Shown here one piece after another: positions 1 to 63,587 of a stretch of DNA of 64,000 nucleotides; within the stretch, counting starts at the first letter, position 1, and every line of letters starts with the position of its first letter. Below the pieces are notes generated by a model. It had not been told where the DNA came from. It ran no database searches and saw only the letters and a program-made list of their open reading frames with translations. This DNA is from Lepidodermella squamata (lineage: Eukaryota > Animalia > Gastrotricha). The stretch covers positions 682,001 to 746,000 of the forward strand of contig JBLDXI010000026.1 of the NCBI GenBank assembly GCA_047495785.1. Direction: 5' to 3'. A program made the position numbers and the translations under genes.

Positions 1-1441
1 GGTTGAAATATTCGGAAACGATTGGAATTTGTTCCGGTTTATAATAAATCAATGCTCTGGGTACTGTTAGCTGAGCCCCATACTTCAGCGCAGCAGCAGC
101 TTCCTCCGCGAACCGAATCGTCTCCAATGCGGCTTTTTCGTAGTCCGCCAAGCCTTTAATCGTCGCTTTTCCTGAGCAAAGCAGCCTGAAAGCCAGATGA
201 AGAGTGTCACGGAAGTTTTGAATCTCTGTAATTTGTGATTGATCGCAGCCTACAGTTTAGGATAATAACAACAATCCTCAAGCTAGCTTTGAAGAAAGTG
301 AAGAAGCCAACCTCTCAAGAAGACCACAGAAAGTAACAAAGCTGCCTCTGCAAATGATGGTTTCCATTTCTCTAGATGACAGGCCAATCTCAGCCCTGCT
401 TGTACCGACATCTGAAAAGAAACCTAGCGATTTTAGGATGGGAATAATTCCAAATATACTTACATTTTGTTCTGGATATGTTGACAAAAAAATGGGCATC
501 ATAGACGGATCCATGTAGAAGCCTTTGCTAGAGACACCCAGGAGAGGCAGCGCAATCATCGCCATAACCGAGAAATTCTTGCCGATCAGCTTTTCCGCTG
601 TTTCTAGAGGAATGCCGAGCACAGCTGAAGAAATAATGCAATAATTTAAGACACCAGTTGTAAACGGTTCTCACGAGATATTGAATGAACAAATTTTCGG
701 CTGATCTTTACGAGTTCACAAATTTGACGCGCCGACATTTCAGTGACAATTCTCACATCAAGATCCGCTCGTCGTGATGTCAGCATCGGTAACTGTTTGC
801 GACAAGAAATTCAGAAGCGTAAAAAACAGAAAGCAACTTACGGAGCTCATGCCGTGAAGCTGCAAAATGCCTTGAATGGAGGCAACAATCGCTTTCTCAA
901 CCTCCTGCCCGTCGAAGAGAGGCGGGTCTACAACAAGGGGCAGCTTGTCCCTAGTTCGGATAGAGTGTTTTGGGAGTGACGTCTGGTCTGGTTTCAGGTC
1001 TAAAACTACGTAAACAAGAGAGCGGAAAACCGAGCGTGAAGCGATAAATAGTCATCGGTAGCGATAAAATACTTTTCCTCCTCTGCATTCCCACTGCGAA
1101 GCACTTGCCGATGCGACATTTAGGGCAAGCTCGACGAGTGTTTCCAGCGATGATTTCGCAGCCGAATCCTCCTTTTGTGCAGCGTAAATTCACGTTTGTA
1201 GAATGTCTGGCAAAGAACTTCTGCAGAAAAGACAAATTTGTCCAAATATGAAAGCAAGGGAGAAATGCTTTCTCACTTGACATGCCGAACATATCCTTGG
1301 GTGGTAAAGCTTCCTACGAGGAACAACAGTTGAGCAGACCTTTTGGGAGACTAAGATTGCGATTTTAAGGAGAAAAGTTGATCAGTCTACCTTGCAATAA
1401 ATTATTAATTTAGTTTTGTGGAATTCTGCCATTTCTGCCAT
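1..1441 (-). CDS. Divergent nuclear-receptor-like gene, subfamily A copy 1 (8 exons; last codons run off the window edge)
   Basis: Manual splicing gives MAE(MAE)FHKTKLIIYCK|VCSTVVPRRKLYHPRICSACQ|KFFARHSTNVNLRCTKGGFGCEIIAGNTRRACPKCRIGKCFAVGMQ (two C4 fingers). LBD-like segments follow: KFVHSISPVLGIPLETAEKLIGKNF, WKPSFAEAALLLSVVFL and the AF-2-like PIVSEYF. Introns are GT-AG with consistent phases. ATG at 1432 or 1441. Confidence 0.85.
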
Positions 1442-1771
1442 TTCTGCCAAGCTGGTGAAGTTCGGTTGGCTTTCCTAGATATAATACCAATACTGAGCTG
1501 TAATTACAATTTGTATGCTGTACAAAAAGCGCGTGAGTGAAGCAGCGAGTTACAAAATGTTCCCGAAGCTAAATATGTTAGTCGATAATTCGACACACGG
1601 CTCATATAGTGCGGCAAAGCGTCCTTTGATTATCTAATTTGTCCGGTTCTATCAGTTTTCATTACTTGTGACATAGGACGTCGGGCACGACGGATTTTCG
1701 TGAAATGGTTATCTCCCATGCAATCACTGATAAATATCGCGACAAAAACCGTTTACTCAATGTCCTGGGTA

Positions 1772-3014
1772 CAGTGCTCCCTCGCTAAGTGCACCCTGGC
1801 TATGTGCAATTCCCTCGTTATCTGCCACACTTTTACAGCCCCCTCAAAATTGGTAATTAAATAATTTTTATTAGTGGAAGAAAAAATTATTTACAAAATT
1901 AAATTTATTAAAGTTCAAGAAAATAGCTTCATTAGCAACGCTGGCTGAGCCACAGCTTTTTTAGCAATGAAAAGGCGGTGCCGGTTAAGCTTGGATCGAC
2001 GCGGGGAATTTCAACAGCTAATTTGTTGCTTTTCGAATAATTTTCGCTCTCTAATAAGGAAGATTATCCGATTGATAAAGGCCGGCTTAATTCAGTTGGA
2101 ATTAGCTGAAGGCGATATACGTTTCACATGCCTTGATTGTTAACCCGGGAATTTTAGGCGACGTGATCTCTCGATCTTTACAGATCGACGTTTTTTATCC
2201 TAGATCATTGAGTGAGCGATTGATAGTGTGCACGCGTCTGACTTATTCGTGATTTTTTTTCATTCGCAACTACTAAAATCTCATTGATGGAACGGTGGAT
2301 AGTGGATGGTGGATGATTTAATGACTTGGCAAATTAGAGTGCTTTACGATGCTGTTCAGCGTGAAGATAAATTGATTGATTATTCAGCCCTTATAATCTG
2401 AGTTCGTTTTAACAAAAATTTTAACAGAAAAGCTCGTCGATAGCAGTGAAATTTGAACTTAACCTAGCTGGCTCATCCCGGTAAAATGAGGCTAAAATCA
2501 GTAATAGGTTTATTAAGAAATAATTCATTATCACAAATGCTTAGATTTTTCTCCTGTTGAAAAAATTGGCGTGGCACAAAATTTTAATATTGCAATAATT
2601 CCAGAAATTATCTCGAATTTATTCGAGCGCTCATTCTGCTTTAACTTTTGACATGATAACAACTAGCAGCCAGATTTAAAAAATTGTTTCGTTATTGATA
2701 ATCATGAGGAAAGCAACCTAATTACCATAATTGCTACGAAAGGCCAAAGGCCATTGATCCCTGGTTGACCAACGATCATTTTCAATTCATCAGATGCTTT
2801 TAAGAAAAAAAATCCGGATCCTTAAAAAGTTATATCGGGCTTGGTTTTAGATATGGCTAACCACTAAAAACAACGTCTCCTTAGTAACTGAGAAAAAAAC
2901 ATAGCTACACACTTATGATTCATCACTACCTCTTTAACAGCCCTCTTTAGCTGCATCCCTAGATAAGTGCACGACCCACAGCCCCGACCCCGTACACTAA
3001 TCGAGGGAGCACTG
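1772..3014. mobile_element. Non-autonomous TA-flanked DNA transposon (Tc1/mariner-pogo-like termini)
   Basis: TA|CAGTGCTCCCTCG at 1770-1784 and CGAGGGAGCACTG|TA at 3002-3016: a 13-bp perfect TIR that extends imperfectly to about 23 bp. The element is absent from the paralogous upstream region of copy A3 (~12950-12975). No transposase ORF is visible. Confidence 0.8.
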
Positions 3015-3161: not shown

Positions 3162-3273
3162 GACGGATCTATGATGAAACCATTGTTCGAAACATCCCAG
3201 CATAGGCAGTGCGGCCGTCGTCACGACTGTGAAATTCTCGGCGAATAGCATTTCTGTTGTTCCCAGCGGATAC
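3162..3273 (-). pseudogene. Isolated, frameshifted LBD exon of the nuclear-receptor-like family
   Basis: The reverse strand reads PLGTTEMLFAENFTVVTTAALPMLG/(+1 shift)/VSNNGFIIDPS, homologous to PLETAEKLIGKNFSVMAMIALPLLGVSSKGFYMDPS of copy A1. Confidence 0.75.
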
Positions 3274-4334: not shown

Positions 4335-5797
4335 TCAGGGTTGTGATGTGACAGGAATTAGTGCCACTTCTTCCAGCATGTTTCTTCGAGCGGAATCAAA
4401 AACTGAGGCGGGTCGAGAGTTTATGGCTTTAACGCTTTCTCTGATTTCCATGTGGATGCGACTCATCAAATTCATGCTTTTTCCGAAGTGACGTCGATGA
4501 TCGTCAACACAGCGATTACTGTCTTTTGAGCAGAAATTATGTTTGAACGCTGTATATGTGGCTAGTTTGGCTTGATATAGCCGTGGATTGTTATTGCTCC
4601 CAGCTACAGCTGTATAAAAAATCCACATTTGTTACTTCCACATTCGAAAATATTCTTACTTAAAAAAATGAGATTCACAAAGAGAGCACTCTGAACAAAG
4701 CTCGGCTTCCAGCCTAGCATTTCCTCATTCAGCTTATGCCATGAATCGACGGAAGTCTGAAAATTCATGTTAACTCGATTTTAACTGAAACTATTCATTT
4801 ATACCGCCATCTCTGGGAAGTGGTAGAGCACCTGCGGCATTAAAGCGGGATTGACGAACAATGGGCACTGAATTGCAGGCAGAGCTGAATAGGCGATCGA
4901 AGCTTGCACCCAGCCACTTGACAACAATGTCTGTAAATCCTTCTCAACCAGGTTGTAGGTATCTAGGGTGCAAAGCTCAGGAGAACCTAATGTTGCACAA
5001 AATTGTACCTTTCATGAATTTAGCATAACCTCGAGCAACTCTGTAGAGCTCAGCAATGTGATCTGTGGTGAACGATTGGGCCAGTTCATCTATGTTCTCG
5101 AAACCCACCGTTCGCTTCCTGAGATTCAACTATGGACGAAGAGGCAATTTGTGATGAAATGGGGAAAAACAAGAGAAACAAACCAATTGTAGATCATGTA
5201 GAAGGGTAAAGCCATGGATGGAGCCTTGAATAGCTTTTTCAATTAGCTCGCCATTGAATAAGTTTGGGTTGGAGGGAATCACACGCTCAGCTTCGTCTGG
5301 CGAAGAAACGCTGCCAGTGGATTGTTTATTCTCGGTTATTGTACAATCCCTGAACCGAGGGCTTCCTGTCGCAAATTTCTAGCTAGAAAATATGGGAAAG
5401 TCAAATAAGAAAATTCTGACGTCGCATCCCTTTGACGATGCACTTTTCGATTCGGCATCGAGGGCAACAATCACCACTATCCTCCCGGCTTCGGTTCACC
5501 TCACACTTGTTGTTGCCGCCAAAGCAGACAAGCTGCGACCGTCGACTGAAATTGCGCGTGAAAAATTTCTTGAGAACGACCCAGAAATTCAAAGTTTGTA
5601 CGTTTTTTATTGAAAAAAACACTCACTTGGCAGGCCTGGCATACGCGAGGGTGGTAAAGCTTGCGTTGAGGAACCGTTACAACGCAAACCTGAATCGGAT
5701 ATAAGTATAACAACGGGAATAACCTTTGTATAGGGAATCGGGAACTCACTTTGCATGAAATCATCCGATGAATTTTCAGGTCAGTCCGCGCTTGCAT
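4335..5797 (-). CDS. Divergent nuclear-receptor-like gene, type C (closer to subfamily B)
   Basis: MQARTDLKIHRMISCK|VCVVTVPQRKLYHPRVCQACQ|KFFTRNFSRRSQLVCFGGNNKCEVNRSREDSGDCCPRCRIEKCIVKGMR; family motif PNLFNGELIEKAIQGSIHGFTLLH; terminal exon ends NMLEEVALIPVTSQP*. Confidence 0.8.
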
Positions 5798-6082: not shown

Positions 6083-6492
6083 CTATTGAATGTTGAAATA
6101 TTCCGAAACAATTGGAATATTTTCCGGTTCATAAAACACGAATGCTCTGTCAGCTGTTAGCTGAGCCGCATTTTGTAGCGCAGCAGCAGTTTCCTCGCCC
6201 AACTGAACCGTCTCCAATGCTGCTTTTTCGTAGTCTTCCGAGCAATTATTCGCCGCTTTTCTTGACAAAAGCAGTCTGAGAGCAAGATGAAGAGTGTTAC
6301 GGAAGTTGCGAATCCCCGATTGAACGCAGCCTGCAAGGATAATAATACTAAGCCAGCTCAAGTACCTAGGTAAAGAATTTGAAGCAACCAACCTCGCAAG
6401 AACAACAGTGAAAGTAGCAAAGCGGCCTCAGCAAATAATGGCTTCCATTTGTCGAGGTGGCGGGCCGATTTCAATCCTGCTTTCACCGACAT
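6083..6492 (-). other. Orphan pair of 3' exons (exons 7-8) of a subfamily A receptor: truncated duplicate or alternative terminal exons of copy A2
   Basis: Two open exons with intact splice sites: MSVKAGLKSARHLDKWKPLFAEAALLLSLLFLR|GCVQSGIRNFRNTLHLALRLLLSRKAA...IPIVSEYFNIQ*. It has no upstream exons of its own. Confidence 0.7.
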
Positions 6493-8032: not shown

Positions 8033-9464
8033 CTAGTCTAGGTTAAAATATTCAGAAACGATTGGGAGTTGCTCCGGTTCAAAATACATGCATGCTCTGG
8101 GTACTGATAGCCTAGCTCCGTTATGTAGCGCAGCAGCAGCTTCATCCGCCAACTGAATTGTTTCCGAAGCGGCTTTTTCGTAGTCCTCCGAGCATTTATT
8201 CGCCGCTTTTCCCGAGCAAAGAAGCCTGAGAGCTAGTTGAAGAGTGCTTTGGAAGTTGTGGACGCCAGTAATTCGCGATTTATCGAAGCCTGTAGTTTAG
8301 GATAATAGTAATAACTATGCTAGCTGAATGAATGCAACAGCCAACCTCTGAAGAAGACTAACGAAATTAACGAAGCTGCCTCAGCAAATGATGGTTTCCA
8401 TTTCTCAATATGAGAGACCAATCTCAATCCTGCTTGCACCGACATCTGAAATGAAGCCGAGTTTCAGGCCAGAAATAACTATTAATTTACTTACACAATG
8501 TTCTGGATATGTCGACAAAAATGTTGGCATCATAGCCGGATCCATGAAGAAGCCTTTGCTTGCGACCCCAAGGAGGGGCAGCGCAATCCATGCCATAGCC
8601 GGGAAATTCTTGGCGATTAGCCTTTCCGATGTTTCCAGCGGTATGCCGAACAAAGCTGAAAAACAATAATTTCAAGATTAGCCTGTTTTGAAACGCTTCT
8701 CACGAGCTATGGAATGAGAAAATTTGCGGCTGATCTTTGTCAATTCACAAACTTGGCGCGCGGACAATATAGTGACCATTCGCACATCAAGATCTGTTCC
8801 TCGTGATGTCAGCATCGGTAACTGCGAGAAGAAATTCAGAAGGGAATATACAATAAACAGCAAGAGAACAGACCGAACTCAAGTCGTGAAGCTGCAAAAT
8901 TCCTTGAATTGAGGCAACAATCGCATTTTCGACCTTCTCTCCGTTAAACAGAGGCGGATCTACAACAAGAGGCAAGTTTTCACCTGCCCGGATGGAATGT
9001 TTTTTTGCGAGCGAACTCTGGTTTGATGTCAGAGCCGATACTAGAATTGAAAATCGAACTTGATATGTAATAATCGTCGAAATTAAATAATCGTTGAATT
9101 ACTTTTCTTGCTCTGCATCCCAACTGCGAAGCACTTGTCAAGGCGGCATTTAGGGCAAGCTTGGCGAGTGTTTCCAGCGATGATTTCGCAATCGAATCCT
9201 CCTTTTATGCAGCGTAATTCTGTGTTCGTAGCATACCTGGCAAAGAACTTCTGCCGGAGAGTCAAATTTGTCCAAATATCATTAATGTATGAATGGGCTT
9301 CTTCCTTACTTGGCAAGCTGAACAAATCCTTGGGTGGTAGTGCTTCCTACGAGGAACAACTGTGGAGCAGACCTATTGCGGAATTACACTTGAGATGCTC
9401 AGCAGAAAAGTTTACTTTCTACCTTGCAATAAACTACTTGTCTAGTTTTATCGAATTGCGCCAT
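8033..9464 (-). CDS. Divergent nuclear-receptor-like gene, subfamily A copy 2
   Basis: MAQFDKTRQVVYCK|VCSTVVPRRKHYHPRICSACQ|KFFARYATNTELRCIKGGFDCEIIAGNTRQACPKCRLDKCFAVGMQ...PIVSEYFNLD*. Same 8-exon layout as A1. Confidence 0.85.
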
Positions 9465-9829: not shown

Positions 9830-10530
9830 ATATATTATATCCGGTTTGAAGAAATTCAAGTTCACAGTTGCCCTACTGCTATGAACTTTATGACGGAGCG
9901 CAGCAACAGCCTTATGCGCCAAATTGATAGTAGCGGAGGCGTTATTCTCTTGTTAATCCGACCCTTGAATCGCTGTTTTTCTAGAGGACAGCAGCTGGAG
10001 AGCAAGATGAAGAGTACTCCGGAAATGTTGACTCTCCTTGCATTCTCTCCTTTCTCCTTTCTCGGCCGGATTGTGGTTCCAAATTCTATAACGGCAAACT
10101 TTGTACATGTCTCATTTATTCAGAATTATTGCTCATTCACTTTTCTTGCTCATCGTTCCGACTGCAAAGCATTTATCAATGCGGCATTTGGAGCATACTC
10201 GATAACATTGTGCGACTTTCAGGGGGGTTCATCCCCCCAGCTCGGCCGGATCAGACAACAAAATGAGAATTTATCCCACTGTTCCGTTAATTTTAAGAGG
10301 TTTTGGAGCGTGTATCAGTGGAAAATCTTCAAAATTTTCTCGCTCCGCTCGATTGTGAGTTAAAATAACTAGTAATTTTGGCAAAAACAGCAAAAGAAAT
10401 CGTTCCATCCCTGGCAGATCCAAGATCGCACCCTGCTCGATAAGTATTTCCTGTTATATCGCAGTTCGATTCTCCTTTCTCCTTCAATGCGTGATTTCCT
10501 TGTTCATAGCATGCTTCGCGAAGAACTTCT
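9830..10530 (-). pseudogene. Decayed nuclear-receptor-like gene (middle exons deleted)
   Basis: Remnants: KFFAKHA (~10505-10530), RVCSKCRIDKCFAVG (~10155-10205) and the terminal exon LHLALQLLSSRKTAIQGSD*QENNASATINLAHKAVAAL (~9890-10020), which carries a stop and a frameshift. Confidence 0.7.
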
Positions 10531-11264: not shown

Positions 11265-12671
11265 TTAGGGTAGGTTGAAATAGTCTGACAAAATCGAGAG
11301 TTGTTCTGGTTCATAATACATGAATGCCCTGGGTACTGTTAGCCGAGCCCCAGTTTGTAGAGCAGCAGCAGCGTCCTCTGCCAAACGAATCGTGTCCGAG
11401 GCGGCTTTTTCGTAGTCCTCCAAGCATCTAATCGCCGATTTTCTTGAGCAAAGCAGCTTGAAAGCAAGATGAAGAGTGCTTCGCAAGTTTTCAATCGCCT
11501 TAATTCGCGACTGGTCGCAGCCTGTAATTTGGAGTAAATTAATCCGTGCTGAAATTGCCATGCAAACAGCACACCTCTCAAGTAGACCACAGAAAGTAAC
11601 AAGGCTGCCTCGGCAAACGATGGTTTCCATTTCTCAATATGACAGGCCAATCTCAGCCCTGCTTGTACCGACATCTGAAAGCAAGCGATTTTAAGTTGGA
11701 AATAACTCAAAACTAATGTACATTATGTTCTGGATATGTTGACAAAAAAGTTGGCATCATAGACAGATCCATGTAGAAGCCTTCGCTAGAAACCCCTAGC
11801 AGGGGCAGCGCAATCATCGCCATAACCGAGAAATTCTTGGCGATCAGCTTTTCCGATATTTCCAGCGGAATGCCGAACACAGCTGAAAAAATTATTTGCA
11901 TTCAAGATGAAGTTAAGCTGAAATCGTTTCTCACGAGCAATGAAATGGGCAAATTTGTGACTGATCTTTACCAATTCACAAATTTGGCGCGCCGACAATA
12001 CAGTGACGGTTCTAACATCAAGATCCGACCGTCGTGATGTCAGCATCGGTAACTGTTTGCAAGAATAAAAAAATTCAGCAGCCAAGAAAGAGCAAAGAAC
12101 TTACCGAGCTCATGCCGTGAAGCTGCAAAATACCTTGAATTGAGGCAATAATAGCGTCTTCAACTTTCTGCCCGTCAAAGACAGGCGGGTCTACAACAAG
12201 TGGTAAGTTGTTCTCTGCTCGAACGGAATGTTTGCTTGGGAGTGAGCGCTGGTCTGGTTTCAGGTCTAATACTACAGAAAATCGAGGTTGAAGCATTAAA
12301 ATAATCATCGAATTACTTTTCTTGCTCTGCATCCCGACTGCGAGGCATTTCTCAATTCGGCATTTCGGGCAAGCCTTACGAGTATTTCCAGCGATGATTT
12401 CGCAGTCGAATCCTCCTTTAATGCAGCGTAAATTCACGTTTGTAGCATGTCTGGCGAAGAACTTCTGCAGAAAAGACAACTTTTCAAATATTATCGGATA
12501 TAGTGTTTCCTCACTTGACAGGCTGAACATATCTTTGGGTGGTAAAGCCTCCTACGAGGAACTACTACGGAGCAGACCTTTAAACACAGACTGCTTTCAA
12601 GACTTGTATGGAGAAATTCACAATTTAACCTTGCAATGAATTATTTGTTTGGTTTTGTCGAATTCCGCCAT
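11265..12671 (-). CDS. Divergent nuclear-receptor-like gene, subfamily A copy 3
   Basis: MAEFDKTKQIIHCK|VCSVVVPRRRLYHPKICSACQ|KFFARHATNVNLRCIKGGFDCEIIAGNTRKACPKCRIEKCLAVGMQ...LSILSDYFNLP*. Confidence 0.85.
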
Positions 12672-12796
12672 ATAGAGGCTTGTGAAGATCGGTTAGCTTG
12701 TCTTGATAAAATACCTATATTCTAGCCTGTAAAAACTGCGAAACTGAACAATCAGCGAGTAACATACATTTCCCCCGGAGCTTAATATGTAAGTCA

Positions 12797-12810: not shown

Positions 12811-13094
12811 GCGCTGCTCATAATATGGTCCTTTGATCATTTAATTTTCACGGGTCTGTCAGTTTTCATACTTTGGACCCAGGACGTCGGGCATGGCGGA
12901 CTTTTGTAAAATAGTCAGCAATCACTGAAGAATATCGCGAAACGAACCATTTACTCAATGTCCTAGGCGTTACTTTGCGTGGTTGTTCAGTCTGTCAGTA
13001 ATAAGGATCGCGATTATAATGAAACCGGACAAGTTTAGGCCGGAAAGAAATCTAACCAGCACATTCACCGTGTAATTATGACAGAAGAGTTTAC

Positions 13095-13575
13095 ATTAGA
13101 AACTGATTCATGATGAAAACGTCGCTCGAAACACCCAGGAGGGGCATCGTGACCGACGCCCGGACTATGAAATTCTCGGCGCGATTAGAAGCTGTGCTGC
13201 CAGCGAAATGCCGAACGCTGTTATACCTCTTCGATTCATATTGCATATATAAACACGATCTACGATGCGAAAACCATTCTCTACTATTCTCTCCCCTAAT
13301 TATATTATTTGCTTTGTTTGTCTGATGCAATCATCATTTCGGGTCGAAATTCTTGTATTGTCTGTTGCTGGGCCTTTGCGGCTCTTCGTATGGTTTTCTT
13401 AAGCCTTTGGCTGATTTTGAGATGTATCACCTGAAACAAGCAGTATCCTCAAAAATTATTTAAAATCATATTTCAAGGTGTCTGAGATCTCCACTTCTTC
13501 GACATAGGTTCCTTGCATGTATCTTGCATTGAATAGCTTTTTCCAATTTAGCACGCCATTGAATGAGTTGGGAAA
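13095..13575 (-). pseudogene. Decayed fragments of an A-type LBD exon and of a type-C gene
   Basis: ENFIVRASVTMPLLGVSSDVFIM (~13100-13180) is paralogous to the 3162-3273 fragment. TTGAATAGCTTTTTCCAATTTAGCACGCCATTGAAT (~13529-13564) matches 5226-5259 of the type-C gene. Confidence 0.6.
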
Positions 13576-14082: not shown

Positions 14083-15502
14083 TCAGTTTAGGTTAAAATA
14101 TTCAGATGTAATCGCGCTTTCTTCTGGTTTGTAGTACAGGAATGCCCTTGCAGCTGTTAGCTGAGCCCCACGCTGTATCGCAGCAGCAGCTTCCTCCGCT
14201 AACCGAATCGTGTTCGAGGCGGCATTTTCGTAGTCCTCCGAGCCTTTAATCGCCAACTTTCTTGAGCAAAGCAGCTTGAGAGCAAGATAAAGATTGCTTC
14301 GGATGCTTTGAATCCCTGTGACTCGTGATTGATCGCAGCCTGCAATTTAAGATGATCTTACTCGAGCTCAATCTAGCTCATATCAAGTAGAGGCCAACCT
14401 CTCAAGAAGGTCAAAGAAAGCAACAAGGCTGCCTCGGCAAACGATGGTTTCCATTTCTCAATATGACGCGCCAATCTCAATCCTGCTTGTACTGACATCT
14501 GAAATAAAGCCGCGCCAATATAGGACAGAAAAAAATCTAGCCTCTACTTACACTGTGTTCAGGAAATTCAGATAGGAAAGTTTGCATAAGGGAGGGATCC
14601 ATGAAAAAACCATTGCTGGAAACGCCCAGAACAGGCAGCGAAATCGATGCCATAGCTGAGAAATTCTTCGCGATTAGTTTTTGCGATGTTTCTAATGGAA
14701 TGCCGAACAAAGCTGTAAAGGGAAGGTATTCAACGTGAAGTTGATTTGAAATCAGGTCTCACGAGCAATGGAATGAGCATATTTGTGACTGATATTTGCC
14801 AATTCACAAACTTGACGAGCCGACAATTCAGTAATGGTTCTCACATCAAGATCAGCCGGTCTTGATGTCAGCATTGGCAACTGTTTGCGAGAAAATATTC
14901 GAAATCGAAGAATGAGGAAACAAACCTACCGAGCTCAAGTCATGAAGTTGCAAAACGCCTTGAATTGAGGAAAATATCGCTTTCTCAACTTTCTCTCCAT
15001 CAAAGAGTGGCGGGTCTATAATCAGGGGTAAATCGTCCTTGGCTTGGGGCGAGTGTTTCATTTGGAGCAACTCCTGGTTGGCTCGAAAAGCTGTGATACG
15101 AGTAGGAAAATCGACTCTGAGCCTCAACAATGATCGTCTAATTACCTTTCTTGCTCTGCATTCCAACTGCGAAACATTTCTTAATGCGGCATTTAGGGCA
15201 AGCTTGGCGGGTGTTTCCAGCGACTATTTCGCAGTCGAACCCTCCATTCCTGCAGCGTAAATCCACGTTCGTCGCATGCCTTGCAAAGTACTTCTGTAGA
15301 AATGTCAAATTTGTCAAAATAAACCCGGGACGAAAAGTTTTCTCACTTGGCATGCCGAACATATCCTGGGATGGTACAGCCTCCTACGAGGAACAGCTGC
15401 GGAACAGACCTTTTGAAGAAATAAAAGTGAGATTTGTAAGAGAAAAGATCACTTTTCTACCTTGCAATAAATTATTCGTTGATTTTTATCGAAATCTGCC
15501 AT
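14083..15502 (-). CDS. Divergent nuclear-receptor-like gene, subfamily A copy 4
   Basis: MADFDKNQRIIYCK|VCSAAVPRRRLYHPRICSACQ|KYFARHATNVDLRCRNGGFDCEIVAGNTRQACPKCRIKKCFAVGMQ...ITSEYFNLN*. Confidence 0.83.
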
Positions 15503-15919: not shown

Positions 15920-16452
15920 TGTTCCACGTCGCGCTCAGCTCGACCAGGATGCGACGGGCCAGCAATCTCTCTTATCAAACACCTTCATCGGGCTTCGGCT
16001 CGTAGGTTGTGCCGTTGCGCTCCGGCTCACATACGCGCGCAGGAGCCAGAGCCCGACTACGTTTGATTTCAGCTTTTTACTAGTCATTCTATTTTTGTTC
16101 CATGGAAGCGGAGTAGAAAGTGTGTATTTAAGTGTCTACTAGCCCCTGAGCGGTGTCTACTACAGTGATTGAGACATAAAGCTTGTGACTTCACGATTTT
16201 TGGGTAAATTTGTATTAATTAACAAAATGTTCGGCCACTCGACGTAGTCGATCAGTGCGGTCGGGCTCTGGCTCCCGCGCAAGAAGTATGAGACGGAGCA
16301 CGGCGGGACAATGCGCGCGAGCGTCCATTGTTCTCGATTTGAAGCCCACCGTACTTCGGACTTCGGTGACTACGAGCCGAAACCCGGAGAATGGTGTTTG
16401 ATAAGAGAGATTGCAGGCCCGTCGCATCCTGCTCGACTAGACCGCGATGTGG
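15920..16452. repeat. GC-rich inverted repeat pair (arms ~15920-16060 and ~16240-16452)
   Basis: CAGGATGCGACGGGCC[A/T]GCAATCTCTCTTATCAAACACC...GGAGCCAGAGCCCGAC is present once on each strand. The right arm has an extra internal segment. Confidence 0.7.
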
Positions 16453-16469
16453 TCGCTTTCGGACTTCGG

Positions 16470-17200
16470 TCGTAACTCGTAACATCAACATCGGCGACTG
16501 ATCGCGAGAAACGAGAATCAATGAGCTCAAATGACGCAGCAGCATTCCCAATGAATTGAGGTTTTACAGTCGCTTTTTCAACCTTCGACCCATCATGGAG
16601 AGGCGGGTCCACGACCAGAGGGAATTTAGGTTCACATTCGAAATTAGAGTTTTTTCTTGGCCTGATTGTAGGTCCAAATTTTACAGCGGCAAACATTTTA
16701 TGTATCTATTTATTCCCAAGCAAATTTCTTGCTTATTATTCCGACTGCGAAGCATTATCAGACATCTAGGAAATGCCAGGACTGGCCATCGAAACGTCGC
16801 ATAAGTAAATAGGTAGCAATACAAGAAACTTAAAAATGTCTTCGCGTTATTCTTCTCATTGAATTTAGTAATCTTAGAATTCGAAAATCTAGAAATCGAT
16901 ACGCAGATATTTCTGCGTATCGATTTTCGAATTCTAAGATTATGATGGGTACGTGGTACCCGAAACGTTGCTGAACTTCCACATTATCGGAATAAAATGA
17001 CTCGAGGTCGCAAAACTGTTGCCTTATATTTATATTTTATCCATACGAATATAATTATTTTCTGTGTCGAATCAGAGCTGGGACAGTTCATTATAATTGT
17101 CTACCTTATTACCTAGTGAATAATTCATCGCAATGCGATTCTTCTTTAATGCTGCGTTATTCGTTATTGTTTTTAGCATGCTTCGCAAAAAACCTGTACG
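16470..17200 (-). pseudogene. Decayed subfamily A nuclear-receptor-like gene
   Basis: Remnants FFAKHA (~17175-17192), CFAVG (~16740-16755) and FPLVVDPPLHDGSKVEKA (~16570-16626), plus the start of exon 5 (PMLMLR, ~16475-16495), with frameshifts and intervening insertions. Confidence 0.65.
16869..16942. repeat. Short near-perfect hairpin
   Basis: TAATCTTAGAATTCGAAAATC[TAGAAATC]GATACGCAGA-tatt-TCTGCGTATCGATTTTCGAATTCTAAGATTA: a 31-bp stem with one 8-nt bulge. Confidence 0.8.
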
Positions 17201-17957: not shown

Positions 17958-19401
17958 TTAGTTGAGATCAAAATACTCTGACGCGGTAGCGACTTCCTCT
18001 GGTTTATAGAATTCGAAGGCCCTTGCAGCCGTCAACCGGGCGCCGGTATCTAGTGCGGCTACTGCGTTCTCTGCAAACCGAATTGCTAGATCAGCTATCA
18101 TTTCCTGATTCTCCGAACTCTGCCGTAATGCCGACATCTTCGAAGAAAGAAGCTTGAAGGCAAGGTGAAGAGTGCTTCGAAAGTTTTGAAGTCGCTTGCA
18201 ACCCGATTGCTCACATCCTATCAAGCAAAAATATGTCGGTACTAAGTCACTATGGGTAGGTAAAACCAACCTCTCAGAAAGATCAGTGAGAGAAATAAAG
18301 CTGATTCGATGAACGAAGGTTTCCATCGGCTCATATGGACGGCCACTTTCACCCCTGCTTCCACAGTCGGCTGAAATGTATTATCCTATCATGCGAGAAA
18401 TATTCGATTAAACTAATTACTAACCACATGCTCAGGAAATATCGATAGGAAAATGGGCACAAGTGATTCGTCCATGTAGAACCCATTAGCTGAAACACCG
18501 AGGATAGGCAACGCTATCGCGGACATTACTTTGAAGTTCTTTGCTGTCAGTTTCTCAGAAAGATTCAAAGGAACGTCAAACAAAGCTGTTTTCAACAGAA
18601 AGTTTAGGCGAAAGAACAGGCAATAATTGGACATATTTACGCGCTATGTTCTGAGCAAATTTCGAAGTGATTTTCGCGCATTGGCACACATGACGTGCGG
18701 TCATTTGAATAAGCGAGATAGCATTGTGTTCCGTGCCGTCAGCTGTCAGCATTGGTAACTAGGTCGAATAATACATTTAACCTTATTTTGACCATAATAT
18801 AGAAACTCCGACTTACAGAGCTGAAATCATGAAGTAGTAACATGCCATTTATTGATTTCGCTATAGCATTCTCCACTTGCTCCCCATCGTATAGTGGAGG
18901 GTCAACGACAAGAGGCAAGTTGTTCTCAGGCTCTGAAACTCTATCACTGGAGTTGTTTTGCTCTGGTGGACTAGATTGATTCGACGATCGAGGGCCTGCT
19001 GCTAAACTTGTGATGAATTATGTTGGCTTTAAGTATGATTTTCCTTACCTCTTCTGCTCTGCATTCCAACGGCGATGCATTTATCAAGACGGCATTTAGA
19101 GCAGACTCGCCGAGTGTTTCCAGCAATGTCGCAGTTCGATCCCCCTTTGATACACTGCAAATCCGTAGTTGTAGCATGTCTCGCAAAGAACTTCTGCAAT
19201 AACAGAGGATTCATTTCAGTCCAAGCGATATCTGCAATCTTACCTGACAGGCGAAGCAAATTCTGGGGTGATACAGCTTCCTTGGAGGAACAACAATAGA
19301 GCAGACCTTTCAAGAAACTTTTTCTTGAGATGTTAATGCGAAAAGTTAATTTCCAGTACCTTGCACCGCACTATTCGCTCAACTTTGTCGCACTCGGCCA
19401 T
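17958..19401 (-). CDS. Divergent nuclear-receptor-like gene, subfamily A copy 5 (most divergent A)
   Basis: MAECDKVERIVRCK|VCSIVVPPRKLYHPRICFACQ|KFFARHATTTDLQCIKGGSNCDIAGNTRRVCSKCRLDKCIAVGMQ...ATASEYFDLN*. Confidence 0.83.
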
Positions 19402-52151: not shown

Positions 52152-53529
52152 ATGAAGTCTCTGATCAAGCCGAAGCCTTACAATAAAGTCACTCTATGTC
52201 AGGTAAGTCGCGCTTTTTCAACTCGATTGTTGATTTAACCCTCTTCAAACTCTCATAAGATATGCACTGCTGTTGTTCCGCCTCGAAAGGAATATCAACC
52301 AAGAACTTGCCAAGCTTGCATGAAATTCTTCACGCGGCATCGAAATCATCTCGGAGATCTTGTTTGCCAAGATGGCTCAAATAACTGTGTCATAGTTGGC
52401 GCAGACAGGGGCCTTTGCAAGAAATGCCGTCTGGCAAAGTGCTTAGCAGCCGGAATGAAACGTGAGTATATTGGCTAACTGAAATTTTACATATTCCGAT
52501 TTGATACATTTGGTCATCACATTTTCGATTATTCAGGTGGATCTCGGTCAAAGTCCGCCAAAGTAGTAAACTCCTCGAAGGAGAATTATTTTGAATGTGA
52601 TTCGTCGTCACCCAGCAGTGAAATTGCAATCCTCGATGGTGATATCTTGGAAGATGCACTCAAATTTGCTGTTCATGGATTCACAATACTTCAAAGCTTG
52701 GATTACGTAAGAGAAAATTATTGATGTATTGATCTCACCTGAAATCTTTTAAATTTCCAGCTACCTATGAGGAATGCCACAAGTGAAACTGATTTGGACG
52801 ATTTGCACTGGGGCCAGTTCAACCACTTTTGCTCCGTTTCTTTGGAATATACTCGATTTTTCAAAGGTGGTATATTGCCGATTTTAAATCCCATTCGCTA
52901 AACGTTCCTTGCAGAAAGGTTCAGACTGACCCCACAAGAAGCTAAAGCTGCGATGTTGACCGGCTGGCAATCAGTTTCTACTGCTTTTTCCTGTTTCCCT
53001 GGAAACTCCTGCTCAACTCTGCATCTTAGCCAGGACGCTGCAAGTTGGCTTCTGAAAAATCTTCCTGAATTTAGGGCAAGTTCCATAAGAAAAAGATCTA
53101 TGGAGTTAAAACGCCCTCTTAACAGACAACCTTAGATTCTGCCAATGAACTCGCTGCTGCTCTAGAGAATTGGAGACCTACTCTTTTAGAGTCATCAATA
53201 TTTTTCAGCATGTTACTCTTCAATTGTAGGTTGAATTTTTACATCGATCCATAACTAAGTTTTATCCCTGCAAAGCTGAAGCCGTTTCGCGGTTCCCTCG
53301 TTTGGCGCATATTAGGAAACTTTACACCACAGCATTCAGCTTGATCAGTTCCATGGAAAAGCAGCGCGAACCAGATGAGGCAATGCGTTTTTTGTTGAAT
53401 TGTCATACTAAGACTGTCAAGGCGGCCAAATCAGTCGACCACATGCCAATATTGGGCAGTGAAACGGGCCAAACTTTGAAGGAAGTCTATGAGCTCGCGG
53501 TTGACAATGCTGATGTTTTTGAAGGATAA
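52152..53529 (+). CDS. Divergent nuclear-receptor-like gene, subfamily D copy 1
   Basis: MKSLIKPKPYNKVTLCQ|ICTAVVPPRKEYQPRTCQACMKFFTRHRNHLGDLVCQDGSNNCVIVGADRGLCKKCRLAKCLAAGMK; ILDGDILEDALKFAVHGFTIL; WRPTLLESSIFFSMLLF; QTLKEVY. Confidence 0.83.
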
Positions 53530-55342: not shown

Positions 55343-56699
55343 ATGATTAGCATGGAACAAGAGGAGCCGGTATTCTGTCAGGTGTGTTATGATTTCTGCG
55401 AAATAAAATGATTGCTATCATATTTTTTGCAGATTTGTTCTTTAGTAGTTTTCCGGCGAAAAGAATACCAACCCAGGACTTGCCATGCTTGCAAGAAATT
55501 CTTTTACCGCAACCACCCCAAACGATACTCGCTGCAATGTGTCTCAAACAAGCCGCCGTGCTCCATTATCGGGAATTCCCGGGCGAACTGCACGAGATGT
55601 CGCCTCGAGAAATGCTTCAAAGCCGGCATGAAGTGTTAGCTTATTTTTGTTGATTTTTTCTAGTCAGTAATCGAACTCGTCGGTATTTTGTTTAGCTGGT
55701 AAACGAAGCCATGTTGACAAGAAGCTGGTTATGGCGAGAGAGCCCCGTATGATTGACGGAACAGCGATTGAAGAAGCCATAAAAAATTCGATGTTTGCGT
55801 TCACACTCCTTCACGGCTTGGAATCAGTTGGGTTTAAAATGTTAATCGGTCAATTGTTATGTTAATTATTCCTTAGCTACCGCTGAAGATGTTTTCGGGT
55901 CATTTCAACTTGGAGAAACATCGCGATCTATTGGAAGCTCACCTTCGCCAAAGTTTGAGAATCGGATGGAGTTACGCATGCTGTTTCAAAGGTTTAGGAT
56001 CTCCAATATATTGTGAAGTTATTTACTTTAGATATACAGAAAAATTCGGTCTGAGTAACCGGGAAACCCAGGCGGCTTTTGTAACGGGTTGGCCTACCAT
56101 AGGATCTTCATTATCATGTCTACCTGGCAACGCCACTTCGAAGCTACACCTGAGCAATGATGTCGAACAATGGCTCGTGAAAGATTATCCTGAATTTAAG
56201 GTTGGGATTAATCGATATTCTTTTGTGCATATTTGAACTCAAATCAAACAGGAATCAGTGTATTCAGCTGCCGAACTTGCTGTAGTTTTAGAGCAATGGC
56301 AGCCTTCACTTTTACAGGCCTCAATTTTCATCACCTTGCTACTATTCAAAGGTTTGTTCATCTTTTGATTGAATTTTGGGCTTCAAGCTTTAATTTATCT
56401 CAGTAAATGTTTGCAAGCAGTTCCCGCAAATGTGCAAGCTACGTCGAATTTACATAACTGCTCTTAAAATCGTCGCCTCGGTTGAAGGCAAGCATGGGCC
56501 GCAGAATTCTGTTGCGCTCATGAAGAAATCAAGCGTTGTCTCAGCTCGATTGGCCGACAGCATTAAGTGTTTTGTAACTAAGAACACTGATAACGCCGGG
56601 GTTGTTTCAATCAGGGATAATCTAAGACTGGTGGTTGACGAGATTTGGTTGAATCCGCGAGTGACTCGCAAAGAAAAATTCCCCACCTCAGGTTGTTGA
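55343..56699 (+). CDS. Divergent nuclear-receptor-like gene, subfamily D copy 2
   Basis: MISMEQEEPVFCQ|ICSLVVFRRKEYQPRTCHACKKFFYRNHPKRYSLQCVSNKPPCSIIGNSRANCTRCRLEKCFKAGMK; FGLSNRETQAAFVTGW; LVVDEIW. Confidence 0.85.
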
Positions 56700-59846: not shown

Positions 59847-61168
59847 ATGGTTAGCATGGATCAAGACGAGCTTGTATTCTGTCAGGTGTGTTAAAACTCA
59901 AGGAAAATGATTGATATCATCATATTTTTGCAGATATGTACTTTAAAAGTTCTCCCGCGAAAAGAATACCAACCCAGGACTTGCCACGCTTGCAAAAAAT
60001 TCTTTTACCGCAACCACCCTAAACGAAACTCGCTGAAATGTGTCGCAGGGAAACCGCCTTGCTCAATTATCGGAAATTCCCGCTCGAACTGTACCAAATG
60101 TCGCCTTGAGAAATGCTTCGAAGCCGGCATGAAGTGTAAGCTATGCTTCTTTGTTCTTGACATTCATCGAACATGTCGGCATTTTTATAGCCGGTAAGCG
60201 AAAAAGCATTAACAAGAAACTGGTTATGGCGAGAGAGCCCCGTATGATCAACGCAACAGCGATTGAAGAAGCCGTCAAAAATTCGATTTTAGCTTTCACA
60301 TTACTTCATGGCATGGAATCAGTGAGGCTTGAGAAATCAATCGGTCGTCTGTTATATGAATAATTATCCCATAGCTACCGCTGAAAATGTTTTCGGGAAA
60401 TTTTAACCTGGAAAAGCATCGCGAGCTATTGCAGATCCATACTCAGCAATGTATGAAAATCGGCTGGAGTTACGCATGTTTTTTTAAAGGTTGAAGGCTC
60501 TAACATTGTAAGGAATGAAATATTTACTATTATCGTTACTTATTCAGAAAAATTCGGTCTGAGAAACCGGGAAATCCAAGCAGCTTTTGTAACCGGTTGG
60601 CCAGCGATAGGATCTTCAATGACATGTCTACCTAGCTACGCCACTTCGAAGCTGAGCATGAGCAGTGATGTTACTAAATGGCTACTTAAAGATTATCCTG
60701 AATTTCGGGTTAGGATTAATATAATTATATTTTTTCGTGCTTAAATGAAGATCTTTAACCCAACAGCACTCAGCAGATACAGCTGCTGAACTTGCTGAAG
60801 TTCTAGAGCAATGGAATCCTTCACTTTTGCAAGCTTCAATTTTCTTCACCTTGCTACTTTTCAAGGGTTTGTTCATTTCATGCCATCGATTGAACTTCAA
60901 GGTTGAATTAATTTCAGTGAATGTTTGCAAGCAGTTTCCGCATTTTTACAATCTACGACGCCTTTACATAACTGCTCTTAAAATTGTCGCCTCGGTTGAA
61001 GGCAAACACGGACCGCAGAATTCTGTAGCGCTTATGAAGAAATCAAGCGCTGTCTCAGCTCGATTGGCTGACAGCATGAAGCGTTTTGTCACTATGAATA
61101 GAGACGACACGGGGGCGGTATCAATCAAGGATAATCTAATGCTGGTCGTTGACCAGATTTCTGTATGA
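59847..61168 (+). CDS. Divergent nuclear-receptor-like gene, subfamily D copy 3
   Basis: MVSMDQDELVFCQ|ICTLKVLPRKEYQPRTCHACKKFFYRNHPKRNSLKCVAGKPPCSIIGNSRSNCTKCRLEKCFEAGMK. Close paralogue of D2, including upstream DNA. Confidence 0.85.
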
Positions 61169-62818
61169 AAATCTCGCTAGGAAATACGTTAGTAAAAAAA
61201 CTATATTACATCTGTACAGTCTCTGGGAAGTGTTGAGGAAACGGTTATACTAGCTACCAATGCATGTGTAGTACGTAAATTACCTCAATCGGAACAGAAT
61301 ACCGCAACTTTCAGGCTAGGCTGTGGCATCATCCTCTTCCGCTGGGTCGAGCGTGTAGGCAATGAGCTGGAAACAATTGGAGCAGCATCCCCAGACACAT
61401 CGAAAAAATATAAAGCTGTGCAACTTTTACTTGGCTGAATTGAAGAGGTCATCGTCGATTCAACTTGCTGATTTCACCATGTAAGGGCGGATCTCTCATA
61501 TACTCAGCTTCCAGTTATTCTTCGACTAGGAGCCTTGCCTTACGCATTATTGAAAGTACTTCGACAATAACTTCAGGGACACATTAAATATTGATTTGAT
61601 GGCAGCCCTTAGAGCAATGAACATTTTGCGTGTAATATCGCCTCGAATTCGTCTTGTAAATATTCTGTTGATGGTTCAGGGCAAGGCTGCTATGGAAGCA
61701 CTTTATTTTCTTTCCATTGAAAGGCCAGAAAATAGCGATAATAGACAAAACACGCGGTATCATTTCTTTGAATGATTTCGATTTCATTTTTACATCTCGC
61801 ATCTTACCTATATACTATGGTAAGCAAGTCCTGCGCCTAAGGTGCATATTAGCTTCTACCGGGTTTCTTTATGGATTGTATCTATAGAAAAATTAGTGCT
61901 TTTTCTTGAAATCTTCTAGTTTCTTCTAGTGATATCCTCCAAGCCAGAGTAGCCGCATCGCGACCTGAGAAGTTGTAGATGATTGCTTAATGCCATTACT
62001 TGTTTGACTTTTCAATAGCAACAAATGTTGATGATAGTCATCGTAGGCAAGCGTACAGAAATGCAGGACAAAAGCGAAAGTTATTGCTCTAAAGAACAGG
62101 GACTGGGGACTGCCAAATTCGAAGTTTGTTCGTGGCACCTATGAAAATAGAAGTGCGAACCTACAGCTCAAACTAAGGGAAACAGTGAGACAGAAATGGC
62201 CTTGGCTGACCCTGAGACTTAATTTGCAGAGAAAAGGAAAAAATTCGATGTTCTTATAGTCACATGATAGATAAAACGCGTGATGCCGTATTAAAAGTTG
62301 ACCTGTTTGGGTTTTTAGTCTCCTATTACTAGAAATTTTCATCACCATAAATACGAAACTCAAAGTAGGTCCAATTAATAAACTGCGGGTTGTATTAGAT
62401 TAGATACTGACTGATCAGTGACATCAGCGTCGAGCCAAGTAAGGAGTCAAAAGCATCACTAATGAGTATTCTATAGGTGTCTGTGGATTCGTCGCTAGCT
62501 CTAATTAAATGCACCCTCGACATTTGCACCGGCTCAGAAGCATTGTAAATGGGCGTATATCATTAGTAAATTTGGGACATCTCTAATCTGATGTCATGAA
62601 TCCTTTATAAGCTCCTGCCATTTTATATTGAAGCAAATACAAAGAAATCTCCAGCATTTCATTACAGTTAAGATTAAAATAACAGCTAATAGTTTGAAAC
62701 GGTGGAACGCCCGTTGAAATTCACTACATCAGGTTCCTGTGCCCACCTTCAGACCAACTAGATCACTTCCGCAACAGAACTTCTCGTCGCTTCTGCTTTG
62801 TTTCGAAAAGCTCATAGC

Positions 62819-63587
62819 ATGGAGGAAAACGCGCCTGTTTTATGTCAGGTATGTGATAACATATAAAACTAATGAGACTAATATGATGAATTGCGATGTT
62901 TTGTCAGATTTGTTCTTCCTTAGCTATCAGACGGAAAGAATACCAACCTAGGACTTGTCAAGCATGCCAAAAATTCTTCAGCCGCCATCACTCCAAGCGG
63001 TTCTTGCTGTTCTGTATCGCAGAGAATCCCCCTTGCTCAATTTTCGGTGAATTACGAGCAACGTGCAAGAAATGTCGCCTTGAGAAATGCTTTGAGACTG
63101 GCATGAAGGGTAAGCTGCATTATCTCATCCTGCATAACTCTCGAACATGTCCCTTCTTATCTAGCTGGTAAACGAAGACGTTTTGTTGAGAAATTTGTCG
63201 TAGCTAGAGAGCCGCAATTCATCGATGGAACGGCGATTGAAGAAGCTATCAGCATTTCGATGTTGGCTTTCACACTCCTTCACGGCATGGAATCGGTGAG
63301 ACTTGAAAATGGTGGGGAATTCCAAACACTAAAAAGGAAGATCTATTAAGGAATTGGGGAAACCCAAACCCGGATTGAAAAAGTCTTCAAATTCTTCCTT
63401 TTTGGTGGTGTGAAGTTTTCAACTTCTTAAAATAACGATCAGTCTTCTTTTTTATATTAATTATCTTATAGCTACCGCTGAAAATGTTTTCTGGAGATTT
63501 TAACGCGGATAAACATCGCGAGCTATCGCAAACGCATCTTCGCCAAAGTATGAGCGTCGGAAAGAACTACGCATCCTTTTTCAAAGG
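62819..63587 (+). CDS. Divergent nuclear-receptor-like gene, subfamily D copy 4 (first 4 exons only; interrupted by a retroelement or continuing past the window)
   Basis: MEENAPVLCQ|ICSSLAIRRKEYQPRTCQACQKFFSRHHSKRFLLFCIAENPPCSIFGELRATCKKCRLEKCFETGMK|...|LPLKMFSGDFNADKH. All four exons are open. Confidence 0.78.

Follow-up and report, generated by a model that had tools for sequence, protein, structure and literature searches.

Three tandem gene blocks that probably represent one deeply divergent, taxonomically restricted nuclear-receptor branch

The window, the whole 64-kb stretch of DNA that we analysed, holds 13 intact genes, the truncated gene D4 and five relics of a nuclear-receptor (NR) family. 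The genes lie in three tandem blocks, and we consider it very probable that these blocks represent one deeply divergent, taxonomically restricted NR branch that has grown by local duplication and decay. We propose more tentatively, at slightly less than even chances, that the branch is an unnamed NR subfamily outside NR0-NR8 from an under-sampled, probably spiralian, lineage. Such a subfamily would combine a re-spaced finger, a CxACxK P-box and new response elements with a classical ligand-binding domain (LBD) fold that lacks its sequence signature.

Gene blocks and gene models

The receptor genes occupy positions 2-19401 and 24087-33779 on the minus strand and 52152-63586 on the plus strand (Table 1). 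The genes between the blocks are unrelated and encode a lipase, two Cys-loop channels, a sugar transporter and a CUB/LDLa/trypsin protease. The gene models were built with a home-made spliced aligner, using spliced RNA contigs as a guide. This gave 13 stop-free frames of 332-399 aa from the ATG to the stop codon (A1 lacks its final two codons at the window edge). The introns are of the GT..AG type and 45-75 nt long, with a single exception of 478 nt; those in the A, C and D genes are predictions, and the intron that separates the DNA-binding domain (DBD) from the hinge is uncertain. One exon plan is common to the 13 models, and exon lengths of 63, 118, 161 and 100 nt recur between groups. Both the identity matrix and the trees divide the genes into group A (A1, A3, A4, A5, A6), group C (C1), group B (B1-B4) and group D (D1-D4), with 22-33% identity among the four groups. 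All five relics are located in the A block. The relic that retains the end of finger 2 has a partial inverted copy at about 15815-16139, where the inverted repeat 15924-15995 / 16381-16452 is 83% complementary. On the 3' side of D4 exon 5 there is a 176-nt intron region and an (ATA)13.7 microsatellite (63624-63664); no further exon of D4 was found between the microsatellite and position 64000.

Table 1. Receptor genes and relics of the window, with positions, strand and main features
Feature	Position	Strand	Description
A1, group A	2..1432	-	8 exons, 348 aa read, no lesions; last 2 codons and stop lie past the window start; zf-C4 second finger
Relic, exon-6 region (LBD)	3174..3269	-	tblastn in the masked window, E 4e-4
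C1, sole group C gene	4335..5797	-	8 exons, 363 aa, intact; GT..AG, no internal stop; 25-33% identity to other groups
Relic, group A 3' half (exons 7-8), without DBD	6089..6492	-	tblastn E 3e-18, 57% identity to A5
A3, group A	8033..9464	-	8 exons, 351 aa, intact; spliced alignment
Relic, exon-8 fragment with in-frame stop	9839..10048	-	tblastn E 2e-10
A4, group A	11265..12671	-	366 aa; exon 3 runs into exon 4 as a single open 360-nt stretch; Pfam zf-C4 30.4 bits
Relic, exon-6 fragment with stop	13079..13180	-	tblastn E 3e-5
A5, group A	14083..15502	-	8 exons, 346 aa, intact
Relic, end of finger 2 and conserved motif	16376..16754	-	tblastn
A6, divergent group A	17958..19401	-	8 exons, 356 aa, intact; 54-57% identity to other A genes
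B1	24087..25588	-	8 exons, 376 aa; transcribed, spliced
B2	26195..27693	-	7 exons, 393 aa (exon 6 fused to exon 7); transcribed, spliced; zf-C4 37.1 bits
B3	28631..30186	-	8 exons, 399 aa; transcribed, spliced; finger 2 with 10-residue D-box loop
B4	31786..33779	-	8 exons, 396 aa, intact; 478-nt intron from DBD to hinge
D1	52152..53529	+	7 exons, 346 aa, intact
D2	55343..56699	+	7 exons, 347 aa, intact
D3	59847..61168	+	7 exons, 332 aa, intact
D4, truncated or interrupted	62896..63586	+	DBD whole in one exon, motif exon, exon 5; zf-C4 46.4 bits

An earlier sequence-only reading of this DNA had listed 13 intact genes and one interrupted gene in groups A (five), C (one), B (four) and D (four), and the rebuilt frames together with the truncated D4 reproduce both the list and the grouping. 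Its count of 14 genes in 64 kb holds, but the single continuous array does not, and pseudogene relics are present, but number five and not about six. The tandem birth-and-death origin that it proposed agrees with tandem duplication and the decay of some copies into the five relics. Judged from the sequence, these data support the idea that the receptor blocks arose via repeated local duplication with occasional decay.

DNA-binding domain

All 14 genes contain an NR DBD that is significant in Pfam. The scored exons of A4, B2 and D4 exceed the zf-C4 (PF00105) cutoff of 21.1 bits, and the family DBD has 83-88 matches in the PDB, every one of which is an NR DBD. Eight cysteines (4+4), predicted to ligate zinc, are kept in all 14 genes. 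The first finger has the form C-x2-C-x14-C-x2-C in each of them, and its 14-residue loop carries the motif RRKxY(H/Q)P. The usual NR spacing is C-X2-C-X13-C-X2-C, followed by C-X5-C-X9-C-X2-C (PMC10497141). Since PMC8363021 describes exceptions to this spacing, for example a CHC2 finger, we take the altered spacing of the window genes as a variant that is compatible with NR membership. The P-box follows the form CxACxK (CSACQK, CEACQK, CQACQK, CQACMK, CHACKK or CFACQK). The spacing of the second finger is x6/x10 in group A, x6/x9 in A6, B2 and group D, x5/x10 in B1, x10/x9 in B3 and B4, and x6/x12 in C1; the canonical x5/x9 was found in none of the 14 genes. The first cysteine is already at residue 3-19, so the A/B domain is nearly absent, as had been noticed from the sequence alone. 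For the D4 DBD, AlphaFold2 gave a poor model (pLDDT 60), which matches NR DBDs weakly (TM ~0.4).

Ligand-binding half, expression and selection

The previously described post-hinge motif occurs in each of the 14 genes and departs from its stated form by 0-4 substitutions. Downstream, the LBD is much more divergent across the family than the DBD. The C-terminal half has no sequence match in Pfam or the PDB: the window LBD exons gave no hit to Pfam PF00104 (Hormone_recep) with an E-value limit of 10, and the LBD profile has no NR match in the PDB at the same limit. Read by eye, the C-termini (IVSEYF in group A; VSDIFF and LMDQAF in B; VVDEIW and LKEVYE in D) resemble the AF-2 core motif of the last helix (hydrophobic-hydrophobic-x-E-hydrophobic-hydrophobic), and Y-A/G-x-F-x-K ... 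L-x-x-x-E/D may be a remnant of the LBD signature. To assess the fold, we used the metagenomic relative L001, which has the x14 finger of the window genes, a CEACQK P-box and a conserved phase-0 intron at the corresponding position, and carries H3-H12 in one exon (L001:1251-1925). The one-exon LBDs of the relative (226-232 aa) have no Pfam domain on record. The AlphaFold2 model of the L001 LBD (pLDDT 79, pTM 0.74) retrieved only NR LBDs among its best 50 Foldseek matches (TM 0.5-0.66). VIA-align superposed it on the LBDs of GR, ER and AR with Z 15.8-17.0 over ~197 residues at an rmsd of 3.0-3.7 Å, and the best match in the Atlas search was an HR4-like cluster. The model keeps the full H3-H12 architecture including the beta-turn, a fold shared with canonical LBDs (ER, GR, AR, PPAR, LXR) at 4-13% sequence identity.

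The window exons are colinear with L001 at 17-28% identity. Each of the 13 full-length genes has an exon 7 match to L001 (iE 4e-7 to 3e-3), and exon 6-7 of B2, which is a fusion, reaches 1e-6. For exons 5, 6 and 8 the matches are weak, though correctly ordered (E 0.02 for exon 5 and 0.33 for exon 8). The colinear exon homology supports transfer of the modelled L001 fold to the window genes, whose C-terminal half would then be an NR LBD that has kept its fold though the detectable sequence signal is lost. Thus, the description of the genes as unusual nuclear receptors is borne out by zf-C4 scores above threshold and by the NR LBD fold in the relative.

RNA evidence covers three of the 13 intact genes, B1, B2 and B3, all of group B. 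Contigs of run X1, whose RNA label is the tool's guess, skip the predicted introns of these genes, and intergenic depth is zero; the DNA run X2 shows no such skipping. For B1, an RNA contig joins exons 4-8 at 24349/50-24404/5, 24506-24560, 24722-24768, 24887-24940 and 25363-25415, all GT..AG. The B2 joints are 26455-26503, 26765/26780-26820, 27278-27330 and 27470-27521; two of its acceptors are alternatives that lie 15 nt from each other. The B3 joints are 28933-28981 and 29763-29812. All three copies open to this test are expressed and give no sign of the largely untranscribed set that the sequence-only reading had named as evidence against itself.

The dN/dS ratio was 0.09-0.37 for whole domains and 0.05-0.65 across every segment. 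LBD segments gave 0.06-0.46, which indicates purifying selection, including at the AF-2-like C-terminal end. In the youngest duplicate pairs dS has already reached ~0.35-0.6; therefore, turnover is slow. One X2 DNA contig joins the first-finger exon of B3 to later exons of B2 (joint 27478 to 30014), and this chimera may reflect copy-number variation by unequal crossing-over.

It is possible, though we think it rather unlikely, that the genes form an environmental-sensor repertoire of xenobiotic or dietary-chemical receptors, in line with the chemosensory or xenobiotic role put forward in the earlier reading. Such a repertoire would be quick to diversify in copy number and in its ligand pockets, a behaviour proposed for the supplementary NHRs of nematodes and for HR96/PXR-type receptors. 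The birth-and-death pattern with its relics, the deep divergence of the four groups, an LBD far more divergent than the DBD and the B3-B2 contig are all consistent with such a repertoire. However, no LBD segment has a dN/dS near or above 1, the dS of the youngest pairs shows that duplication was neither recent nor rapid, and the adjoining genes are not detoxification genes. Purifying selection on every LBD segment, the AF-2-like end included, also argues against ligand-independent orphans, which we regard as improbable. Their LBD-like domain would have no role beyond that of a platform for dimerisation or corepressors, or the array would be largely redundant and drifting to loss. The LBD signature is indeed too degenerate for a PF00104 or PDB sequence match, five relics and one truncated copy have accumulated, and the finger 2 loops vary between groups from x5 to x10 and from x9 to x12. 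Nevertheless, the helix-1 motif is retained in 14 of 14 genes, the tested copies are expressed, and the L001 model has a complete architecture.

Relationships and significance of the family

The reading that we prefer, one restricted NR branch, agrees with the DBD phylogeny, a check suggested earlier. The 14 window DBDs group with three metagenome DBDs in a single clade (SH-aLRT 99), which has a long stem among 80 other NR DBDs, in a tree of 66 columns and low resolution. Among 1.8 billion representative proteins, the family was found in only one other organism, a metagenomic one, and in annotated flatworm and mollusc proteomes no protein matches it beyond finger 2. Our literature search found no paper on the family, nor a described NR expansion with its finger spacing into which it could fall. 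The term lineage-specific, used in the earlier reading, thus holds for public data, which contain the family in this genome and one metagenomic organism. This restriction may partly mirror poor sampling of relatives, since the best named matches of the neighbouring lipase, which are molluscan, are only 41-44% identical.

Like the window family, the nematode supnrs (an HNF4-derived NHR expansion) are large, lineage-specific, partly tandem sets of short, fast-evolving receptors whose LBDs are divergent and whose P-boxes are non-canonical. In the PDB, the window DBD profile also matches HNF4-alpha best (58 bits), followed by RXR (55), NR5A2 (53) and ERR (50), and a lead of 3-5 bits over RXR and NR5A2 does not establish HNF4 affinity. 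The window family differs from the supnrs in its 14 first-finger loop residues and in an LBD without a sequence match to any NR, and its host appears not to be a nematode, since the neighbouring lipase is closest to molluscan proteins among named matches. "Divergent NRs" of flatworms and molluscs, 17 of them in Macrostomum lignano, likewise are lineage-specific duplicates outside the NR subfamilies with atypical P-boxes, duplicated independently in different lineages (PMC8363021, available text). However, CxACQK is not among the P-boxes quoted there, and that text does not mention a 14-residue first finger.

The least probable origin, which we consider improbable indeed, is a single-DBD offshoot of 2DBD-NR/NR7 that kept the first DBD and lost the second: the window family shares an xACxK-type P-box followed by FF with 2DBD-NR first DBDs, CEACQK and CHACKK are one residue off their published P-box CEACKK (PMC10497141), and the 2DBD-like P0038 and P0044 combine CEACKK with a 14-residue loop, but the window proteins have one DBD each, starting 3-19 residues from the N-terminus, with different second-finger spacings and an RRKxY(H/Q)P loop missing from CEACKK first DBDs, the family HMM scores CEACKK domains at 50-51 bits, no better than CESCKK or CETCKA, and in the low-resolution DBD tree the CEACKK first DBDs are not sister to the family and join the CEGCKG second DBDs elsewhere.

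For the branch as we read it, the receptor layout would consist of a near-absent N-terminus, a two-finger DBD, a variable hinge, the helix-1 motif and an LBD-type domain with an AF-2-like end. We infer zinc binding, DNA binding, ligand dependence and the biological role of the family. Its members would most likely be sequence-specific transcription factors that recognise half-sites outside the canonical AGGTCA class. A classical LBD would control their activity through small ligands and/or binding of partners and coregulators, and the paralogue groups may have distinct DNA and ligand or partner specificities.

Nuclear receptors are a textbook example of a strictly conserved DNA-binding module. 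Every member of this family has an extra loop residue in finger 1, a rewritten P-box and freely varying finger 2 loops, and the family is thus a natural experiment on the tolerance of the module. Because the LBD gives no detectable sequence signal, Pfam-based receptor counts in unusual invertebrates would label such genes as DBD-only. If the family is indeed an unnamed subfamily, a reading that we hold as a little short of an even bet as a whole, its proteins would recognise response elements of a new class.

Arrangement and structure of the receptor genes

The window is animal DNA with a G+C content of about 41% and very short introns. A six-frame scan detected twelve nuclear-receptor-type second fingers. 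Clustering of the open segments revealed two repeated protein modules, one comprising a DNA-binding domain (DBD) plus hinge and one C-terminal, with about 14 recurrences in three regions. The sequence-only reading had described a large tandem expansion of receptor genes. The recurrent receptor copies were found, but they are interrupted by unrelated genes, so the array consists of three separate blocks. The lipase among these unrelated genes is at best 41–44% identical to named proteins, mostly molluscan, and 54–65% identical to unnamed ENA metagenome fragments. At most 41–44% identity to a named protein means that none of the annotated species is closely related to the host, which, as a tentative reading of the lipase matches, may be spiralian.

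Genes located between the receptor blocks of the window
Feature	Position	Strand	Remarks
Lipase, pancreatic-type, single-exon, 484 aa, PLAT domain	21329–22783		lies between block A and block B; Pfam E-value 4e-93
Cys-loop ligand-gated channel gene or fragment	34495–35742
Sugar transporter	about 39.6–41.4 kb
Mosaic serine protease, CUB/LDL-receptor class A/CUB/trypsin	43006–46104	minus
Second Cys-loop ligand-gated channel gene or fragment	48968–49471 (fragment); also delimited as 48968–49712

Pairwise identities showed that the proposed division of the receptor genes into groups A (five genes), C (one), B (four) and D (four) is correct. The close A genes are 71–80% identical to each other, and A6 is 54–57% identical to these. 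Identity is 78% for D2/D3, 67% for B3/B4 and 22–33% between the groups. The post-hinge motif that had been noticed earlier occurs in each of the 14 genes (0–4 substitutions), and, again as noticed earlier, there is almost no A/B (N-terminal) domain, since the first cysteine is located at residue 3–19. Thirteen genes have ATG-to-stop frames of 332–399 aa, A1 without its last two codons because of the window edge. D4 ends after exon 5 and is followed by an (ATA)13.7 microsatellite at 63624–63664; no later exon of D4 is seen as far as base 64000. Five decayed fragments lie among the group A genes, and two of them contain stops. Inside a decayed receptor fragment there is an inverted repeat of 72 nt (15924–15995 and 16381–16452, 83% complementary). 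Part of this relic has been duplicated in inverted orientation.

To build the gene models, we used a protein-to-genome spliced aligner seeded on RNA-supported models, followed by curation of all units. Models from an ORF-maximising intron search, with or without weighting by homology across groups, were over-extended or out of frame and were discarded. The spliced proteins served to check frames, to build alignments and trees and to calculate dN/dS; searches and folding were run exon by exon. The introns are all GT..AG and 45–75 nt long, with the exception of one intron of B4 (32921–33398), which has 478 nt compared to about 50 nt in its relatives. The insert in this intron has no match elsewhere in the window. 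The genes follow a common exon plan, in which exons of 63, 118, 161 and 100 nt are found in both group A and group B. An intron lies within the first cysteine pair (CK|VC) in the genes of groups A, B and C. The corresponding intron of group D lies one residue later (CQ|IC) and is absent from D4. Group D has no intron inside the P-box, D4 also lacks the first intron, and in B2 (26504–26820) the intron between exons 6 and 7 is gone, leaving one 261-nt exon. These absences indicate independent intron losses among the paralogues.

The stretch 24090–30089, in the region of B1, B2 and B3, is present in two public sequencing runs, X1 and X2. The X1 contigs omit segments of 47–58 nt with minus-strand GT..AG ends within all three genes, and the X1 depth between the genes is zero. 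X1 behaves as RNA. X2 covers the whole stretch without skipping any of the segments omitted by X1, and behaves as genomic DNA of a slightly different strain or species. Thus, all three of the testable genes are transcribed and spliced; the sequence-only reading had named a lack of transcription of most copies as a point against it. For B2, the RNA contigs show two acceptors, at 26764 and 26779, separated by 15 nt. One X2 contig (joint 27478 to 30014) joins B2, from the finger-2 exon onwards, to the first-finger exon of B3 with 38 other letters between them. Its depth is 45 compared to about 76–95 nearby, and the unjoined form is also present in X2. The joint could be a 2.5-kb deletion allele produced by unequal crossing-over of paralogues; alternatively, another chimeric copy may lie at a different place.

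The DNA-binding domain

Pfam zf-C4 scores of 30.4, 37.1 and 46.4 bits were obtained for group A, group B and group D exons, respectively, above the curated cutoff of 21.1. The canonical nuclear-receptor spacing is C-X2-C-X13-C-X2-C followed by C-X5-C-X9-C-X2-C (PMC10497141). In every gene of the window, the first finger is C-x2-C-x14-C-x2-C (x14 finger), with the loop motif R-R/P-K-x-Y-H/Q-P. The second finger has spacings of x6/x10, x6/x9, x5/x10, x10/x9 or x6/x12, and the canonical x5/x9 occurs in none of the 14 genes. The P-box is CSACQK or CFACQK in group A, CEACQK in group B, CQACQK in C1 and D4, CQACMK in D1, and CHACKK in D2 and D3. When compared with the PDB, the DBD matched nuclear receptors only, and no subfamily was favoured: the family profile scored 58 bits with HNF4-alpha, 55 with RXR, 53 with NR5A2 and 50 with ERR. 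For the D4 DBD exon, AlphaFold2 gave a model with a pLDDT of 60, too uncertain for judging the 14-residue loop. Its best Foldseek matches are nuclear-receptor DBDs, with a TM-score of only about 0.4.

Metagenomic relatives and the C-terminal half

The longest open stretch (120 aa of A4, with finger 2, hinge and motif) was compared by phmmer with 1.84 billion representative proteins, a library that does not include the window's own proteins. All 56 matches were obtained via finger 2 only. One of them, P0047, was identified by visual inspection of its x14 finger as a true relative; its P-box is CEACQK. This protein comes from the ENA metagenome scaffold L001, on which two such receptor genes lie in tandem. 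Exon 1 of the first gene encodes the DBD, the hinge and the motif, and exon 2 encodes all the rest. The intron between them (60 nt, GT..AG, phase 0) has the position of the fourth intron of the window genes. A search of 5.8 billion clusters with the L001 second exon, with or without window exons, gave only six further family proteins, all from ENA metagenomes and with no Pfam domain on record. Tandem receptor-family genes with one intron each were observed at L001:636–2952 (ERZ23486764) and on a second scaffold, L002:41–2042 (ERZ23486787), at 35–37% G+C. Thus, a second organism carries the receptor family in tandem. ERZ27333047 is a further ENA scaffold connected with the family. When exon fragments were combined into one profile, the rows of exons 6 and 8 were misaligned by MAFFT; alignment A2 contains exon-6 and exon-7 rows only. 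These two window exons align cleanly with the metagenome proteins, with common motifs LP-G/N-x-N...F and W-N/K-P-S-L/F-x-E-x-A-L.

The C-terminal exons of the window have no Pfam match even at E up to 10, and even when the groups of the window are compared with each other, single C-terminal exons score below 45 bits. When the fused B2 exon 6–7 was used in a language-model search, the result was terpene synthases, which were rejected as a chance similarity of a helical fragment. As modelled by AlphaFold2 (pLDDT 79, pTM 0.74), the L001 second exon contains eight helices and a small hairpin. It turned out that all of the model's top 50 Foldseek matches are nuclear-receptor ligand-binding domains (LBDs), with a TM-score of 0.39–0.66, mostly 0.5–0.66. 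VIA-align with GR, ER and AR gave Z values of 15.8–17.0 over about 197 residues (rmsd 3.0–3.7 Å), exceeding the caution threshold that the tool sets for helical proteins (about 13). In the ESM Atlas, an HR4-like cluster with Hormone_recep and zf-C4 was the closest match. By sequence, the LBD profile of the L001 second exon found no nuclear receptor in the PDB at E up to 10. Window exon 5 maps to L001 LBD positions 12–38 (hhalign E 0.02), exon 6 to 60–96, exon 7 to 101–129 in 13 of 13 genes (iE 4e-7 to 3e-3), and exon 8 to about 160–220 (hhalign E 0.33), so that exons 5–8 are colinear with the L001 LBD. From the predicted LBD fold of L001 and this colinear mapping, the C-terminal halves of the window genes are taken to be nuclear-receptor LBDs. 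By eye, we would assign the conserved post-hinge motif to helix 1 and the C-terminal sequences IVSEYF, LMDQAF and VVDEIW to an AF-2-like end.

Selection, phylogeny and meaning of the family

Within the groups, dN/dS (Nei-Gojobori) is 0.09–0.26 in the DBD and 0.12–0.37 in the LBD. Across nine segments it is 0.05–0.65 per segment, and none approaches 1. For the youngest pairs (A1/A3/A4/A5 as well as D2/D3), dS is about 0.35–0.6; other comparisons are saturated. The receptor copies are old and maintained. In the LBD tree, seven metagenome proteins separate from 13 window proteins (support 100/99), and groups A and D each form one clade. In the DBD tree with 80 other nuclear-receptor DBDs, the 14 window and three metagenome DBDs form one long-stemmed clade (SH-aLRT 99), in which two metagenome DBDs adjoin B1 (support 80). 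At the low resolution of the DBD tree, this hints that the receptor groups may be older than the split of the two host organisms.

We also considered a single-DBD offshoot of the two-DBD nuclear receptors (2DBD-NR), whose published first-DBD P-box is CEACKK (PMC10497141). The first DBD of two retrieved 2DBD-like proteins (P0038 and P0044) has this P-box and a 14-residue first-finger loop, with a canonical CEGCKG DBD after it. Hence, the window family is not alone in having the extra loop residue. In the DBD tree, whose resolution is low, the family and the CEACKK first DBDs are not sister groups, so this tree gives no support to such an origin.

An already described receptor expansion with the same finger spacing had been named as an argument against an independent radiation. 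In the largely open-access literature covered, neither such an expansion nor a receptor family with matching finger spacing or P-boxes was found. The nearest precedents are the flatworm and mollusc "divergent NRs" with atypical P-boxes (PMC8363021) and the nematode nuclear-receptor expansions. Overall, the analysis supports the view that the window genes are an unusual, taxonomically restricted nuclear-receptor radiation. The sensory or xenobiotic role that had been proposed from the sequence alone is only a hypothesis.
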